Source: Octopus bimaculoides (taxonomy: Eukaryota). From it: a stretch of DNA of 62,164 bases. Below are positions 4,183 through 51,246 of this stretch, in pieces. The position numbers and the translations under genes were made by a program. The stretch lies in assembly GCF_001194135.2 (NCBI RefSeq), contig NC_068997.1:51583462-51645625 (forward strand). The letters run 5' to 3'. The notes below the pieces were generated by a model. It saw nothing but the letters and a program-made list of their open reading frames with translations. It was not told where the DNA came from and made no database searches. How positions within the stretch are numbered: the stretch's first letter is position 1; the number at the start of each line of letters is the position of its first letter.

Positions 4183-4196
4183 CATATAATATAAGC

Positions 4197-4328
4197 GCAG
4201 GCGTGGCTGTGTGGTAAAAAGCTTGTTTCTCAACGACATGGTTCCGGGTTCAGTCGTACTGCGTGGCACCTTGGGCAAGTGTCTTCTACCATAGCCTCTG
4301 GCTGACCGAAGCCTTGTTAGTAGATTTG
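4197..4328 (+). mobile_element. SINE group A head
   Basis: GCAGGCGTGGCTGTGTGGTAAAAAGC...GGGTTCAGTCGTACTGCGTGGCACCTTGGGCAAGTGTCTTCTAC. Confidence 0.85.
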
Positions 4329-9053: not shown

Positions 9054-9359
9054 AGGCGCGTGGCTCAGTGGTTAGGGTATTCGGCTCACGATCATGAGGT
9101 CATGAGTTCGATTCTCGGCGGCGCGTTGTATCCTTGAGCAAAACACTTTATTTCACGTTGCGCCAGTTCGCTCAGCTGGCAAAAATGAGCTGTACCAGTA
9201 ATTCAAATGGGCCAGCCTTGTCACGTTCTGTGTCACGCAGAATGCAATAAGGCTCCACATGTTTGAGGAGTACGCAGCCACTTGCATGGTAATTTGTCGT
9301 GCAGGCTATTCCGTTGATCCGATCAACTGGAACCCTCGTCGTCGTAATCGACGGAGTGC
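9054..9359 (+). mobile_element. SINE group D (head, core, tail type 2)
   Basis: GGCGCGTGGCTCAGTGGTTAGGG A-box; GAGTTCGATTCTC B-box; tail GCCAGCCTTGTCAC...GATCCGATCAACTGGAACCCTCGTCGTCGTAA. Confidence 0.85.
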
Positions 9360-19885: not shown

Positions 19886-22115
19886 AATCGAAGGACCTAC
19901 AATAGTCCCTCAAAAAATACGCAGGGATAAAAATGAGCCCCACTTCTTATATCAAAATTTATTTGGAAATTAAAGAGAGCAAGGTTACCACCAACATGCC
20001 AACAAGAGGGATTATAGTCAAGGTTTCAAATACATGAAAAATAAGCAGTCTTTGCTTGAGGGTGATATACAACATCGTGGGTCAATATTCCGCTGTATTA
20101 AATAAGAAGCCCGAAATTTTGTTCTCAAGCAATCAGAGAGAGAGGAAAAAAAGAAAAAAAGAAACGCCGAAATCTGCCAACACCAACCGAAAATTCTTTA
20201 AAACTCAAATTGAAATACTCTTTCCTGAATGAGCAAAATCTATATTCTTGAAATCGATCAGCTTTGGAATAGAAAATCAATAATTGAAGCTCATGAGGGC
20301 GCAACACTAATAGCATTGACAGGAATAGATACTACGTACATGTGGTGAAAATATTTCCACGTGCATTACATTAACAAAGGGTTTAATGAAATAGAATGAA
20401 TCTAAAATGGATAGCGGTACTATATATATATATATATATATATATNNNNNNNNNNNNNNNNNNNNNNNNNNNNNNNNNNNNNNNNNNNNNNNNNNNNNNN
20501 NNNNNNNNNNNNNNNNNNNNNNNNNNNNNNNNNNNNNNNNNNNNNNNNNNNNNNNNNNNNNNNNNNNNNNNNNNNNNNNNNNNNNNNNNNNNNNNNNNNN
20601 NNNNNNNNNNNNNNNNNNNNNNNNNNNNNNNNNNNNNNNNNNNNNNNNNNNNNNNNNNNNNNNNNNNNNNNNNNNNNNNNNNNNNNNNNNNNNNNNNNNN
20701 NNNNNNNNNNNNNNNNNNNNNNNNNNNNNNNNNNNNNNNNNNNNNNNNNNNNNNNNNNNNNNNNNNNNNNNNNNNNNNNATATATATATATATATACTGA
20801 GAATTAGAAGATTAAATATATGTGTGAATGCTTGTTTGTATATATGTGTATGTACGTGTGTGTGTGTGAACCTGTTTTAAGAATTTCCGTCCAAAATATG
20901 AATTCACAAATTAATAATGAAAATTTCAATATTGCTCCCATTATTTGTACAGTTCCAACTTCCCAGCTGGTCTTTTAATCTAAAATAAACTATACACCTA
21001 TATTCATTATTAAATCGACCTGAATTCCTTTAATTTCTTTCGCAGACCATTTTATGGGGGTGGAAAAAGAGAAAAAAAATGAAACTATATCAGCTCCCAT
21101 CACTACCCCATTTTGCTTAAGTACACTGATTATTTTAAATATGTAACACGTTCCTCAGGAATGAATTAAGGAAGTTTAAATGTAGGCCTAGAAACGCATC
21201 GTCTTTGTCTGTATAAGCATGAGCCCTGGCAGCCACTCTACATTGTCGGCATGACTATCATCGTCGTAGCGGTTATCGTATTAGCGGTCAGTGGTGAAGC
21301 CGTTGCCGTCGTCATCATCATCGTAATCCTCACAATCATAATCAACAACAACTGCAACAACAACATTTCTACCACTACAACCATGACGACCTTCTTTGCT
21401 GTCTTTTATTCCATAATGTTGCTTCTCTCAAATCACGCTGCTAGAAATCACCATCTCATCCCATTCATATTTTAGATCGATACCTATGAATGTTTGTCAA
21501 ATGCCGTTATTGATTACATTGATCTATTAAATATTAAGACACAAGCTATTCCATGGGTGATGGTTTCGCGATGGCATGAAGTCACAGACTATGACCGTCA
21601 AAACAAATGAATCTGTTAGTATTCTACCTATGGTTATATGGGATTCAGTAATCGCATTATTTTGTCCGAGTTAATGGTTGTCTATGTTTGATGCAATAGA
21701 AATTCAATGCTGCAATTCCAGCAGGAACCAATTCTTCGACCTTTCTGAGATGGGAATGCTGTTGCGTTGATCCGTTATATATCCAAGCTTATTGTATTAA
21801 CCGTAGAAGGGAGGCGGGGCAGCATATAAGATGGTGTTGCAATCAAGATATACGTCGGTGGTTGCTGGATAACTTCGACTGTGTCAGTCTTTTAACATGG
21901 AGACAGTCTTTTAAAAGTGGAGAGTAAATATGCTAATGTGCACCGTTTTCTTCCCGATACGCATTCTTGTTTCTATTGATCATGCGTTTGTGTTGTGGGT
22001 TGTAATGCAGCAGTAACCGAGTTTAGTCATGACATGGCTTGAGTGTGTACCGCCAGAGAGAGCCCTCGAGTTTTAACCCTACTTCCGTGCCCTAATCAGC
22101 TTAAACAGGCTTATA

Positions 22116-33700: not shown

Positions 33701-34520
33701 TATTTCATTACCACGATTTTTAGACTTTGTATAAATAAATCAAATCCAAAAATGTTGCATGGTCACATCTTCTGAATGAAGTGGTTAATATAAGTGTGTG
33801 TTGACATTTTGCATTCGAATCAAGTAGTCGTATTTGTGATTGGTGTTTTGTTGGTGTTGCCATTACCTCATAGGCTGAGGTTTTCATTGTTAGTTATTTT
33901 GATTCACTTGTCAACTGTTATTGTTTGTTTGCGACGAGGGCATTCTTATCTGTGTTTATTTTGGTATTTTTCAGTCTTATTAGGATTTGTTTCAACATTG
34001 CTCGTCTCTGTCTTGTGGGAAATGTTACTTTTCAGTTTTATTTTATATTTTGTAGTGATATGCATTACTATTGCTCATTGTTGTCGTTGACGATAACGAT
34101 AGTAATGATGATGTGTTGCTCTAGTTCAGTTCTGATAGTCAGCCGAATAACAGTACGTAACTCAGTTACCTATTTACACAACGTCACCGTCTTGCCGAGT
34201 GCAACTGTGAACACTATAACATACATTGAAGACCTCTAGGGATCATTCTAGAACACACGTTTTTCAATCTGTGCCTTCACAATATTACCGCACCTCCACA
34301 AGTGCGTACAACCTTATACACTGAAATCACACTATCTTCTCTTCACTTCACTTTCCGTTTTAGAGTGGTGCTTTTTCATCGACCCCAAAATAATGACAGA
34401 AAATCTGACCCCGGTGCAATATGATCTCAAAACACCGACGTTGTAATAAATTCCACAAAGCATTTATTACTAATAACAATTCCGTAATTTTCTAGTTTTG
34501 GGTGATTTATTTTGTTTAAT

Positions 34521-34885
34521 ACAGTTCTATATTTAAGAGATGAGGAATTATGTACATTATTTATATTATTTACATTTGACGGATATTTGTCATCTTGTTT
34601 GTTGTTAACACAACATTTCAGCTGATATACTATCCAGCCTTCATCAGGTGTCTTGGGGAAATTTCGAACCTGGGTTCTCATTCCTAAGGTATTTTTCGAT
34701 ATTATTATCATTATTATTATTCAGGTCACAGCCTGGAATCGAACTTTGAATCTTGAGGTTTGTAGCCTGCGCTCTTAACCGCTGCGCCATATGCCCGTGA
34801 TGAAGGCTGGACGGTATATCAGCCGAAACGTTGTGTTAACAAACAAGATGAGGACAAATATCAGTCAAATGTAAATAATGTAAAT
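34521..34885 (-). mobile_element. Composite element: tRNA-derived SINE head, PLE-like tail with hammerhead, and inverted tail copy at the 5' end
   Basis: A-box TGGCGCAGCGG (34779-89) and B-box GTTCGATTCC (34735-44) on minus; HHR at 34607-34652; about 88-bp inverted arms at 34559-34646 and 34798-34885. Left boundary uncertain (34521-34560). Confidence 0.75.
34607..34652 (-). ncRNA. Minimal type I hammerhead ribozyme in the SINE tail
   Basis: GACAC-CUGAUGA-A-GGCUG(GAUAGUAUAU)CAGCU-GAAA-UG-UU-GUGUU. The inverted sister copy keeps CAGCC-GAAA-CG-UU, so the two deviations here look like CpG decay. Confidence 0.75.
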
Positions 34886-36058
34886 CATATAAATGTTATT
34901 TTGTTTATTTTTCATTTATATGTTTGGTGCAGTTTTGGTGCTTTGTGTTTGAGATTCACAATTTATTCTGTGCAATTAGGCTGACGCATTTTATTTTAAT
35001 GTGGAATTTATGGCTTATCCGCATTTACGATTAGATTAATGCATGTTTGAATTTCTGATTATTTGTTTGGGATTGAAGAATTATTTAAATTCTGAGAATC
35101 ATGGCCCACTTTTCTTGGCAGAACTCTTTTTATATTGGTTTTCTAAAGTTTGTGAAAGAACTTTTGCCTCCTATAGTGATATGAAAGCTTGTCAGACGAT
35201 AATTGATATATTTGAAAAAAAGCCGAGGTACTGTTTGATAAATGATCCTTGAGCTAGGTGTGTTGGAACAGAATGTTGATATTTGAAGAAAAAGCGGGTA
35301 ATTCGGTCCTTAGATATTCCAGAGTTGACATAAGCGCATCAGATGACCCCCGCCCCAAGAAGCGGCGCTCTACATGTCCCATATCCGTATCTCCGGATGA
35401 CCCGATTCGATGGACGAGATCGTTTATTCAGAAACGAGGACAGTTTCCAGTGTTTCCAAAAGCGTCTCCCGGCTCCTTTGCGCTTTTGCCGTTTCGCCTG
35501 ACCACCACCACGACTATGATCCTGGAAACCCTTAGAGATGTGCATGAGTGTTGGTTTGTGCTAATTAAGATATTAAACGTTTCCGGATGTGGGTAATATT
35601 TCAGCCGCAACCATATATTGTTCATGTAGCATTTAAACAACCGGGAAGATGTAGATAACATTGAAATGTCTGCCAATGATGAAGTTTGCTAGAGCTTAAA
35701 TTGATGAAGTTATGGGACAATTCTAAGTGAATTGTGAACGGGTAATTAAGCGTAGTAATTAGACTGTCAATGTTTCTACCAAAGGTTTGCATTAAGTCGA
35801 TCTTGTCTGTTTAATACTCAAGCAATTAATGCTTATATAGAGGGGGTTTAGGTCAGTTGGACACGTGACTGCTAATGATGGGGGGGGGGTCAATCTTTCG
35901 CTTTTCTATCTTCATCATGGTAGTTGTGGTTGCGGTGGCTGAGGCGTTGGTGGTTACGTTCGTGGTGGTGCTGCAGATGCTGGTGATATTTCCCCACACT
36001 GCCTTCAAAATAAATTCATACATACATGCTAATTACATACATGCATACATACGTATCA

Positions 36059-42147: not shown

Positions 42148-42167
42148 CAAACATCGTTGTTGTTGTC

Positions 42168-42254
42168 ATTATTATTATTCAGGTCGCTGCCTGGAATCGA
42201 ACTCGGAATCTTGGGGTTAGTAGCTCGCGCTGCTAACCACTACGCCATATGCCC
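42168..42254 (-). mobile_element. Second copy of the tRNA-derived head of the 34521-34885 element, without the HHR tail
   Basis: GGGCATATGGCGTAGTGGTTAGCAGCGCGAGCTACTAACCCCAAGATTCCGAGTTCGATTCCAGGCAGCGACCTGAATAATAATAAT. Confidence 0.85.
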
Positions 42255-42261
42255 GTATACA

Positions 42262-44003: not shown

Positions 44004-44148
44004 GCAGGCGTAGCTAAGAGCTAAGAAGTTTGCTTCTGTACCACATGGCTTCTGTTTCAGTGATACTGTGTGGGACATCGGGCAAGTGTCTTCTACTGTA
44101 GCTTCCGACCGATGAAAGCCTTGTGAGTGGAGTTGGCAAATAGAAACT
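44004..44148 (+). mobile_element. SINE group A head fused to a Tc1 fragment
   Basis: GCAGGCGTAGCT...GGGCAAGTGTCTTCTACTGTAGC...GCCTTGTGAGTGGAGTTGGCAAATAGAAACTGTG. Confidence 0.8.
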
Positions 44149-44656
44149 GTGTTGGAACCATAAACTCTGAAAAATATATCGAAATACTTAAGCAAGGACT
44201 TCCGACGTATTCACACGATAGCATAACGAAGAATGAGTTTTTATTCATGGAAGATGGAGCTCCATGCCACAGAGCGAAAAGGAATCAACGATGGCTGACT
44301 GAAAATGGGATCAAAAAGCTTCCTTGGCCGAGCCAATATCCTGACATGATCCCAACTGAAGATCTTTGGAGCATACGAGATAGAGCTATACGAAAAACTC
44401 GACAGAAACCTAAATGTAATGATGAATTGTTTCGATTGTTGCGTGAAAAGTGGGTAGAAATTCCACAAGAGACAATCACAAAGCTCATCAGTTCAATGCC
44501 AAAAAGAGTTTCTGAATTAAAAACTGCAAAGGAAATGTCAATTAAATGCTAAAGTATGTAGTCTTACCTATCGATTACATTTCAAATGTTCGCTTTGCGT
44601 ATCAAATAAAAAAATTTGAAAATTAAAGGTGTCTATTTACTTCCTGCATGCCTGTG
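44146..44656 (+). mobile_element. Tc1 (DD34E) transposon 3' half with transposase C-terminus and right terminus
   Basis: GTINSEKYIEIL...FMEDGAPCH...WPSQYPDMIPTEDLW...SMPKRV; 34 residues between D and E; stop at 44550-52; AATAAA downstream; end GGTGTCTATTTACTTCCTGCATGCCTGTG|TA. Confidence 0.92.
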
Positions 44657-49432: not shown

Positions 49433-49509
<77 letters not shown>

Positions 49510-49985
49510 NNNNNNNNNNNNNNNNNNNNNNNNNNNNNNNNNNNNNNNNNNNNNNNNNNNNNNNNNNNNNNNNNNNNNNNNNNNNNNNNNNNNNNNNNNN
49601 NNNNNNNNNNNNNNNNNNNNNNNNNNNNNNNNNNNNNNNNNNNNNNNNNNNNNNNNNNNNNNNNNNNNNNNNNNNNNNNNNNNNNNNNNNNNNNNNNNNN
49701 NNNNNNNNNNNNNNNNNNNNNNNNNNNNNNNNNNNNNNNNNNNNNNNNNNNNNNNNNNNNNNNNNNNNNNNNNNNNNNNNNNNNNNNNNNNNNNNNNNNN
49801 NNNNNNNNNNNNNNNNNNNNNNNNNNNNNNNNNNNNNNNNNNNNNNNNNNNNNNNNNNNNNNNNNNNNNNNNNNNNNNNNNNNNNNNNNNNNNNNNNNNN
49901 NNNNNNNNNNNNNNNNNNNNNNNNNNNNNNNNNNNNNNNNNNNNNNNNNNNNNNNNNNNNNNNNNNNNNNNNNNNNNNNNNNNNN

Positions 49986-50025
<40 letters not shown>

Positions 50026-50576: not shown

Positions 50577-51246
50577 NNNNNNNNNNNNNNNNNNNNNNNN
50601 NNNNNNNNNNNNNNNNNNNNNNNNNNNNNNNNNNNNNNNNNNNNNNNNNNNNNNNNNNNNNNNNNNNNNNNNNNNNNNNNNNNNNNNNNNNNNNNNNNNN
50701 NNNNNNNNNNNNNNNNNNNNNNNNNNNNNNNNNNNNNNNNNNNNNNNNNNNNNNNNNNNNNNNNNNNNNNNNNNNNNNNNNNNNNNNNNNNNNNNNNNNN
50801 NNNNNNNNNNNNNNNNNNNNNNNNNNNNNNNNNNNNNNNNNNNNNNNNNNNNNNNNNNNNNNNNNNNNNNNNNNNNNNNNNNNNNNNNNNNNNNNNNNNN
50901 NNNNNNNNNNNNNNNNNNNNNNNNNNNNNNNNNNNNNNNNNNNNNNNNNNNNNNNNNNNNNNNNNNNNNNNNNNNNNNNNNNNNNNNNNNNNNNNNNNNN
51001 NNNNNNNNNNNNNNNNNNNNNNNNNNNNNNNNNNNNNNNNNNNNNNNNNNNNNNNNNNNNNNNNNNNNNNNNNNNNNNNNNNNNNNNNNNNNNNNNNNNN
51101 NNNNNNNNNNNNNNNNNNNNNNNNNNNNNNNNNNNNNNNNNNNNNNNNNNNNCAGTAGGCTGAAGTAATTGATAGATGAAATGGATGAAATAGAGGTACA
51201 TGGATGATTCTCTAGGTCTCTTCAGAAATTTCATATAAAGTTCCAT

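Follow-up and report, generated by a model that had tools for sequence, protein, structure and literature searches.

A tRNA-headed, hammerhead-bearing SINE family of octopus genomes, probably mobilised by Penelope-like elements

Here we describe a composite repeat in a stretch of 62,164 nucleotides of Octopus bimaculoides DNA (contig NC_068997.1), referred to below as the window. The structure at positions 34519-34895 is probably a single old insertion belonging to a composite SINE family that occurs in octopus genomes, is non-autonomous, carries a tRNA-derived head and is mobilised by Penelope-like elements (PLEs). The same modules were found in the same order at other loci. Inverted partner copies, target-site duplications and an extension at one end only match the insertions left by PLEs, which makes a PLE-mobilised composite SINE the most economical reading of the structure. 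No SINE assigned to a PLE partner was found in the searchable literature.

Results

Organisation of the element in the window

Read on the minus strand from 34797 to 34519, the element is composed of a head, an (AAT)n linker, a body, a hammerhead and an AT-rich tail (Table 1), and the whole structure between the duplications occupies 377 bp. No run of four T residues is present within the window element or in the 284-nt consensus of the family, and no open reading frame for a reverse transcriptase was found in the 62-kb window. The window copy is an old, decayed relic, with a CpG to TpG change at ribozyme positions 11.1 and 15.2.

A preliminary description of this DNA, made from the letters alone, had proposed a SINE with a tRNA-like head, an (AAT)n spacer, a short body, a type I hammerhead and an AT-rich tail. 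All these features were found at the minus-strand positions given there, and the reported lack of TTTT between head and ribozyme holds for the entire element. The upstream AT-rich part of the interval described has to be reassigned, as it actually represents the tail a second time, in antisense and truncated at its 5' side. This inverted copy, the 12-nt duplication, the one-sided 3' extension and the second head at 42256-42153 were absent from that description.

Table 1. Features of the composite element and of a related head in the window
Feature	Position	Strand	Remark
Left target-site duplication, TTATTTTGTTTA	34507-34518		Perfect 12-nt direct repeat of 34896-34907
3' extension, the long-form end of the sense copy, ...GTACATAATTCCTCATCTCTTAAATATAGAACTGTAT	34519-34552	-	The inverted arm at this locus lacks it
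Tail, AACAACAAACAAGATGACAAATATCCGTCAAATGTAAATAATATAAATAAT	34553-34606	-	Aligns in 10/10 loci and in inverted arms
Minimal type I hammerhead	34607-34652	-	Descriptor match
Body, 43 nt, AAAATACCTTAGGAATGAGAACCCAGGTTCGAAATTTCCCCAA, with a second B-box-like GGTTCGAAAT inside	34653-34695	-	Always with the hammerhead in external copies
Linker	34696-34720	-	(AAT)n (34720-34701), then ATCGA
tRNA-derived head, 77 nt, the 5' end of the element	34721-34797	-	12/13 universal tRNA positions
Head A box, TGGCGCAGCGG	34789-34779	-	
Head B box, GTTCGATTCC	34744-34735	-	
Inverted, 5'-truncated second copy (ribozyme from U4 and short-form tail)	34798-34895	+	Inverted repeat; nhmmer E = 2e-26
Right target-site duplication, TTATTTTGTTTA	34896-34907		Perfect 12-nt direct repeat of 34507-34518
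Second head and linker, without body, hammerhead or tail; then (GT)n	42153-42256	-	84% identity to the head at 34797

The tRNA-derived head

The head is colinear with tRNA numbering, and 12 of the 13 universal positions match (U8, A14, G18, U33, R37, which is A37 in the consensus, G53, T54, T55, C56, R57, A58 and C61); at a fixed register, the probability of such agreement by chance is about 7e-8. In the consensus, the A box TGGCGTAGTGG lies at positions 8-18, the B box GTTCGATTCC at 53-62, and the anticodon loop is CU-ACU-AA. The tRNA-like nature of the head proposed earlier is borne out by these boxes and by the universal positions in register.

Only 9 of the 21 tRNA stem pairs are kept in the head, which accounts for its being missed by tRNA finders. 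ARAGORN at default settings reported no tRNA in the window, and the Rfam tRNA model (RF00005) gave no match at its gathering score, nor at E<=10 in the window and E<=1 in eight external loci. With relaxed settings, the window copy alone was called by ARAGORN, as tRNA-Cys(ACA). The 5' ends of five copies (window, window copy B, L001, L008 and L013) agree within 3 nt, at GGGCAT..., which corresponds to tRNA +1, as expected of a Pol III start.

A profile search revealed no further composite copies in the window. Its sole further match was the tail-less head, recovered as 42251-42153 by nhmmer and covering profile positions 2-100 only. Window copies A and B have a common linker variant, (AAT)4-GAY-AAY-AAY.

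The hammerhead ribozyme

On the minus strand the ribozyme reads GACAC-CUGAUGA-A-GGCUGG..UCAGCU-GAAA-UGU-U/GUGUU. Helix I (GACAC/GUGUU) is of 5 bp and helix II (GGCUGG/UCAGCU) of 6 bp, an extra A follows CUGAUGA, and GAAA is followed by UGU-U17. Cleavage after GUU at 34612, as predicted in the preliminary description, would fall between 34612 and 34611 and yield a 5' fragment of 186 nt counted from 34797.

The 62-kb window was scanned with a descriptor demanding both core boxes (CUGANGA and GAAA), no more than a single extra nucleotide, 4 bp or more in each of helices I and II, and U16.1-H17. It matched two sites, 34652-34607 and another, different one (15229-15195). In first-order Markov shuffles, 0.013 descriptor matches were obtained per window and none when 5 bp were demanded in both helices, a stringency which the site at 34652-34607 satisfies. 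Thus, matched by descriptor against such a low expectation, the type I hammerhead described earlier is real. The minimum-free-energy fold of the isolated hammerhead segment contains helices I and II.

Conservation was assessed in an alignment of ten copies. None of the ten departs at C3, at the extra A that comes after A9, or at A13/A14 of GAAA; U4, G5, A6, G8 and A15.1 are conserved in at least 90%, and A9 and G12 are kept in the majority, while N7 is free to vary (U, C or A). The designated helix pairs are formed in 83% of alignment cells, as against 18-51% with the partners slid. Covariation in the ribozyme helices amounts to two compensatory pairs in these ten copies, no better than in shuffles. 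The pair 10.1-11.1 is G-C in five of the ten copies and G-U in three; in the window, the sense copy has G-U and the inverted arm retains G-C.

The inverted arm of the window reads CAGCC-GAAA-CGUU and the sense copy CAGCU-GAAA-UGUU. Each of the two differences is a CpG to TpG change, which indicates that G10.1-C11.1 and a perfect ACGU palindrome were present in the ancestral ribozyme. This palindrome is present in the window inverted arm, L004 and the inverted copy of L005, and its CpG-decayed form AUGU in most other copies. Loop III is absent, and helix III is reduced to the palindrome 15.1-16.1. G10.1-C11.1, the lack of loop III, palindromic 15.2/16.2 and an A after CUGANGA are among the traits of the minimal hammerhead ribozymes (min-HHRs) of PLEs (PMC4209133). 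The window motif carries these PLE-specific traits.

The Rfam Hammerhead_1 model (RF00163) gave no match at its gathering score, nor at E<=10 in the window and E<=1 in eight external loci, as is to be expected for a ribozyme without helix III. Matches to miRNA models that Rfam returned in L008 were rejected as artefacts of the head-to-head hairpin.

Copies at other loci

Further copies were sought with a 94-aa open reading frame (34427-34711, minus strand) that runs through body, hammerhead and tail; in its frame, PDEGW corresponds to CCU GAU GAA GGC UGG of the hammerhead. The head lies outside this bait, and the sample of loci is therefore unbiased as to head presence. An exhaustive HMMER search returned 20 proteins, all matching element-encoded residues only. 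Contigs behind eight of the nine hits tried provided nine independent external loci: L001, L003, L004, L005, L007, L008, L013 and L017 from the SRA series SRR11869384-94, and L018 from a 626-kb ENA contig. Together with the window they make up the ten loci considered here. The external sample is small and consists of ORF-bearing copies only, drawn from that SRA series, the ENA contig and a single UniRef entry. Scans of IMG/VR and of JGI metagenomes, collections that seem to contain no cephalopod sequences, for exact DNA patterns of the ribozyme core and of the head returned no matches. A 48-aa open reading frame spanning head to body, a short and low-complexity query, gave no candidates in protein searches.

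One of the matched proteins, UniRef A0A0L8FV75, an 'uncharacterized protein' of Octopus bimaculoides, is a translated copy of the family, which places the family in Octopus. The loci from SRR11869384-94 show a weak match to an abundant SINE of the window, a hint at a related cephalopod. Units are about 250-285 nt long, and copies are 8-29% diverged from the 284-nt consensus. A related headless unit was noticed in other assemblies (P0006, P0014 and P0017), where it forms tandem arrays of about 129 nt.

Recurrence of the composite order

Head, linker, body, hammerhead and tail follow one another in this order in the window, L001, L003, L007, both copies of L008, and L013. The head is present in all seven copies that reach 5' of the linker (window, L001, L003, L007, the sense and the inverted copy of L008, and the sense copy of L013). 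The inverted copy of L013 is an eighth head-bearing copy, with the contig edge cutting within its linker. At L007 the contig edge falls inside the head, and L001 retains the first 14 nt of the head (GGGCATATGGCGCG) and has an internal deletion. L004, L017 and L018 are 5'-truncated copies, and the L005 unit starts exactly at the body (TCGAAA...), where head homology stops. The length of the linker varies: in L008 it is as short as 7 nt, and in L001 the linker is a degenerate A/T-rich stretch exceeding 100 nt.

The antisense copy of L008 includes head, body, hammerhead and tail, and a head is also found in the inverted copy of L013. The occurrence of the head within inverted copies indicates that it was part of the reverse-transcribed RNA. 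A head-tail junction unique to this locus had been named in the preliminary description as one of the findings that would refute its proposal of a PLE-mobilised SINE; instead, the order recurs in at least five other loci, and the count of head and tail together, which it had suggested making, comes to seven out of seven copies extending past the linker. The head-tail junction is thus a family trait, rather than the result of chance nesting. The head module and the 3' module may also exist separately, as seen in the tail-less 42256-42153 and in L005.

Scars of insertion

The arms of the inverted repeat in the window (34550-34646 and 34798-34894) are 97 nt each and 86% complementary. The plus-strand arm is truncated at its 5' side right after C3 of CUGAUGA and abuts the first base of the head with no spacer. 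An abutting, inverted, 5'-truncated partner was found in seven of the ten loci (window, L001, L003, L005, L008, L013 and L018), with an 18-nt spacer between the sense and inverted copies in L001. L004 and L017 have no inverted arm, and L007 could not be scored because of the contig edge. The truncation point differs between loci: it lies at U4 of the ribozyme in the window, in the same box in L005, in the body in L003, in the tail in L001, in helix II in L018, and in the head in L008 and L013. Inverted arms are between about 80 nt and about 220 nt long.

The 12-nt direct repeat TTATTTTGTTTA surrounds the window structure, with P of about 1.25e-4 in local-composition shuffles. Its right copy begins 1-2 nt past the outer end of the inverted arm (34894/34895), and its left copy lies 31 nt past the end of arm homology; this gap of 31-34 nt is the conserved long-form 3' end. 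In L001 and L018, the structure as a whole lies between 10-nt direct repeats (ATAAATAGTA and ATAACAGGAA, respectively), and no direct repeats of at least 10 nt were found around L003 or L005. Duplications of 10-12 nt are thus present in three of the five complete structures. In the window, no duplication surrounds the head alone.

In the window, L001, L003 and L018, a single one of the two copies carries the 3' extension of about 35 nt; in L005 both do. Its sequence is conserved in the inverted copies of L001 and L018, the sense copy of L003, both copies of L005 and the O. bimaculoides ORF P0001. The 3' end consists of two to three copies of a 9-nt unit, AAATAATGT. No partial direct tandem of the pseudo-LTR type was detected in the ten loci, where copies are single or head-to-head and never head-to-tail. 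The window, L001 and L018 insertions lie in AT-rich unique sequence, and L017 adjoins (TAC)n and (GAT)n runs.

Insertions of PLEs are 5'-truncated and often have an extension of 30-40 bp at one end only (Craig et al. 2021, PMC8557442; TE curation guide, PMC8969392), and the features given for them there are stated not to be seen in the target-primed reverse transcription (TPRT) of LINEs (PMC8557442, PMC8969392). Target-site duplications around the whole unit, a partial direct tandem forming a pseudo-LTR and a bias towards microsatellites were also described for PLEs (PMC8557442). The inverted twin, the one-sided extension and the duplication match the published marks of PLE integration.

Discussion

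A possible route of mobilisation

The following sequence of events would account for the structures observed. Pol III would start at tRNA +1 and transcribe the whole unit, which has no internal T4 terminator. The 3' module (body, hammerhead and tail) would then serve as a handle for the PLE reverse transcriptase and GIY-YIG endonuclease, as the type of the ribozyme and the insertion scars suggest. If reverse transcription were primed from each of the two nicked strands of the target, one strand would receive a full-length copy and the other a copy truncated at its 5' side, the two being joined head to head. The pair would be flanked by a target-site duplication of 10-12 nt, with the long 3' end usually on one copy only. 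This is the architecture seen in the copies themselves. The hammerhead, which has an ACGU palindrome in place of a helix III with its loop, by analogy could cut only as paired ribozymes, and such cleavage would free the head-body part of about 186 nt from the tail.

The use of PLE machinery was already proposed in the preliminary description, and both the insertion architecture and the PLE min-HHR traits argue for it. Some of our observations weigh against a PLE-mobilised SINE. Direct tandems of the pseudo-LTR type, the other mark of PLEs, were not found in the ten loci. The covariation of the ribozyme does not exceed that of shuffles, and no copy gave an Rfam hammerhead or tRNA match. The tail-less head at 42256-42153 and the start of L005 at the body also fit this reading poorly.

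Alternative origins of the composite structure

The main rival is the recurrent formation of chimeras by template switching, which we regard as unlikely. A PLE-derived unit of body, hammerhead and tail, either a solo pseudo-LTR or a retrozyme-like element, would be joined to a separate simple SINE consisting of the head and (AAT)n. The reverse transcriptase would reach the 5' end of the unit RNA and jump to the 3' end of the SINE RNA, as in U6-L1 chimeras, and the same junction would arise repeatedly. The tail-less copy at 42256-42153, which ends in the linker, would then represent the simple SINE, and L005, which begins where head homology ends, would be the unit without it; the highly variable length of the linker and the tandem arrays of the related headless unit are also in line with such an origin. 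However, template-switch chimeras are normally a small minority, whereas the head accompanies every copy that extends past the linker. Moreover, the linker variant common to window copies A and B makes B look derived from the composite subfamily, and in L008 both copies of one integration event have the head.

It is also conceivable, though we find it improbable, that the family is an ordinary LINE-dependent tRNA SINE, with a 3' module taken from a CR1- or L2-like LINE, a hammerhead-like motif that is incidental or inherited, and inverted copies arising by twin priming. CR1 and L2 LINEs end in short tandem repeats, and the repeated 9-nt unit at the 3' end could suit some LINE clades; duplications of 10-12 nt are typical of LINE integration too. 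Nevertheless, abutting inverted copies in seven of the ten loci are far above what is known for LINE-driven SINEs, and the ribozyme has PLE-specific traits. Twin priming of the L1 type inverts an upstream part of the same RNA without duplicating its 3' end, but here both copies share the tail.

Chance nested or adjacent insertion of a tRNA SINE and a hammerhead-bearing inverted repeat is very improbable: at least two families of hammerhead repeats and several of tRNA-derived SINEs are scattered in the window, and no separate duplication around the head would be expected if the head lay at the junction, but one 12-nt duplication flanks the whole structure while none flanks the head alone, and this explanation is contradicted by at least five further independent loci in which the modules follow one another in the same order. 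The least probable origin, to which we give hardly any credence, is a derivative of a DNA transposon (MITE or foldback) with a hammerhead-like sequence in its terminal inverted repeats; it would agree with 97-nt inverted arms flanked by a direct repeat, but some copies (L004 and L017) have no arm, the outer ends are the 3' ends of the element in long or short form rather than fixed termini, duplications of 10-12 nt and variable length misfit the cut-and-paste superfamilies, and arm length varying by locus through 5' truncation contradicts it.

Relation to known elements

Returning to the PLE-mobilised SINE, its ribozyme can be compared with the minimal type I hammerheads which Lunse and co-workers reportedly described in PLE pseudo-LTRs in 2017. 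Like the pseudo-LTR min-HHRs, it has the CUGANGA and GAAA cores, G10.1-C11.1, no loop III and palindromic 15.2/16.2 (PMC4209133), and in the min-HHRs of PLEs this last combination implies action as dimers (Cervera and de la Pena 2014, PMC4209133). Thousands of min-HHR motifs were reported, most of them dispersed in non-coding DNA (PMC7761336). In contrast to the ribozymes of pseudo-LTRs, the octopus motif sits in the 3' module of a tRNA-headed element of about 280 nt, with no adjacent RT/GIY-YIG open reading frame.

The closest precedents of the octopus family are the schistosome SMalpha repeat and the animal retrozymes. SMalpha has a canonical, efficiently cleaving type I hammerhead and is often found in tandem; Pol III promoter boxes were also reportedly noted in it by Ferbeyre and co-workers in 1998. 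In the passage of PMC8490949 that cites Ferbeyre et al. 1998, SMalpha and Sjalpha of Schistosoma appear as short dispersed SINE-like elements with a type I hammerhead. The octopus family shares with SMalpha the union of SINE-like structure and a type I hammerhead in a short dispersed retroposon. According to the features described for SMalpha, the octopus element differs in that its hammerhead is minimal and of the PLE type, its copies are dispersed or head-to-head, and its host belongs to a different phylum.

Metazoan non-LTR retrozymes are non-coding, hammerhead-bearing and non-autonomous (Cervera and de la Pena 2020, PMC7229834), as is the octopus family. It has been argued that retrozymes descend from the pseudo-LTRs of PLEs and make use of PLE enzymes (Li et al. 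2026 preprint, 10.64898/2026.07.22.740005). Retrozymes consist of tandem repeats of 170-400 nt, give circular RNAs processed at two ribozyme sites, and have no tRNA head (PMC7229834; 10.64898/2026.07.22.740005). The octopus family, in contrast, has one ribozyme per unit, a head of the Pol III type and no direct tandems in the ten loci.

Octopus was already said by Ohshima and Okada, in 1994, to harbour tRNA-derived SINEs, OK and OR. Classical tRNA SINEs with tails taken from LINEs, OK/OR among them, resemble the family described here in their tRNA-derived head containing A and B boxes, their fixed 5' end, their truncation at the 5' side, their target-site duplications and their modular build of head, body and tail. 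Several features of SINE2 elements were found in this family, which is short, non-coding, dispersed and multi-copy (10 loci and the UniRef copy), with a common 5' end, truncations and duplications of 10-12 nt. What sets it apart from classical LINE-tailed SINEs are the tail module, the inverted truncated partner and the one-sided extension, which point to a PLE partner. The octopus family most likely spreads by borrowing PLE enzymes.

Implications

A broader proposal, which we put forward tentatively and with less than even confidence, is that a Pol III-driven tRNA SINE may have a PLE instead of a LINE as its partner and be recognisable by PLE scars, with the hammerhead and tail acting as the handle of the PLE reverse transcriptase. 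If this were general, many of the orphan min-HHRs, thousands of which are scattered through invertebrate genomes, would be SINE tails. Self-cleavage could occur only when two ribozymes pair, by analogy with PLE min-HHRs, and the ACGU palindrome would possibly act as a dimerisation handle in the choice of template by the PLE reverse transcriptase.

Among the major mechanisms of retroelements, none is understood less well than the retrotransposition of PLEs. An in vitro system for it was called for (Craig et al. 2021, PMC8557442), and a non-coding element of about 280 nt with all cis-signals would be a compact natural substrate. It could serve to ask what the PLE reverse transcriptase and the GIY-YIG nuclease recognise, what purpose the hammerhead has, and how the inverted twins originate. 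For annotation, the UniProt 'uncharacterized protein' A0A0L8FV75 of Octopus bimaculoides can be flagged as a translated SINE. The family would also provide a genomic context for many of the dispersed minimal hammerheads, and would widen the relationships between SINEs and their partners beyond LINEs.

Other repeats and gaps in the window

A second minimal hammerhead family, unrelated to the hammerhead of the head-bearing SINE at 34797-34519, is represented in the window by one good and one degenerate copy, which lie in direct orientation at a spacing of about 245 nt. Both units terminate in a microsatellite, (TA)n or (TACA)n, and neither has a tRNA-like head in its vicinity. This family could be the remnant of a pseudo-LTR of a Penelope-like element (PLE), or else a different non-autonomous family that targets microsatellites.

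Two further tRNA-derived families are present. The more abundant one, SINE-like and with eight copies in the 62 kb of the window, resembles the major Octopus SINE, and the 3' end of its copy at 42445-42262 is directly adjoined by the tail-less head copy at 42256 (head and linker of the hammerhead SINE). The other matches the profile of the hammerhead SINE family weakly, through similarity of the heads. Among the ORFs of the window, just one is clearly protein-like, and from its motifs it looks like a transposase fragment.

The window contains 3138 N. Nearly all of the gaps are bordered by microsatellites of the (TA)n or (AT)n type, a pattern expected when a genome rich in microsatellites is scaffolded from short reads; the representation of elements adjoining these gaps may be incomplete.

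Repeats, ORF and gap sites in the window
Feature	Position	Strand	Sequence
Second minimal hammerhead family	15229-15195; about 15480-15440	-	GUUU-CUGAAGA-A-GAGC-GUU-GCUC-GAAA-CGU-U-AAAC
Abundant tRNA-derived SINE-like repeat	42445-42262	-	...GGTTCTGGGTTCAGTCC...GGCACCTTGGGCAAGTGTCTTCTAC...GGTAGACAGAAACTGAAAGA...
Further copies	4189-4307; 1008-902; 30649-30515; 44005-44136; 4491-4383; 55498-55408; 18888-18850		
Third tRNA-derived SINE family	9055-9330	+	head GGCGCGTGGCTCAGTGGTTAGGG...GAGTTCGATTCTCGGC
Further copies	51526-51384; 19732-19650; 12017-11935		
141-aa ORF	44127-44552	+	Tc1/mariner transposase C-terminal motifs DGAPCHRAK...LPWPSQYPDM
Gap sites (examples among many)	980-1240; 20440-20790; 49500-49990; 50580-51150		

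Hammerhead units as a source of misannotation

The 51-aa Octopus bimaculoides 'uncharacterized protein' A0A0L8FV75_OCTBM of UniRef (P0001) is an annotation artefact, namely the translated body, hammerhead, tail and extension of the hammerhead SINE. Three other matched proteins (P0006, P0014 and P0017, on ENA contigs of 65-352 kb) are spurious ORFs in which a repeat of about 43 aa (about 129 nt) occurs two to four times in tandem. Every one of these repeats codes for a related set of body, hammerhead (CUGAAGA...GAAACGUU) and tail. Judged from the protein sequences, they seem to be headless tandem arrays, resembling retrozymes, of a unit related to that of the hammerhead SINE.

Misannotation might also concern RNA. 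At the external locus L008, two SINE heads form a head-to-head dimer (162-281) that yields a long hairpin; against Rfam, this hairpin matched several plant and animal miRNA-precursor models, with E down to 6e-6 and below the gathering scores. Inverted twins of the PLE type could give rise to miRNA annotations that are false, or to genuine hairpin RNAs.
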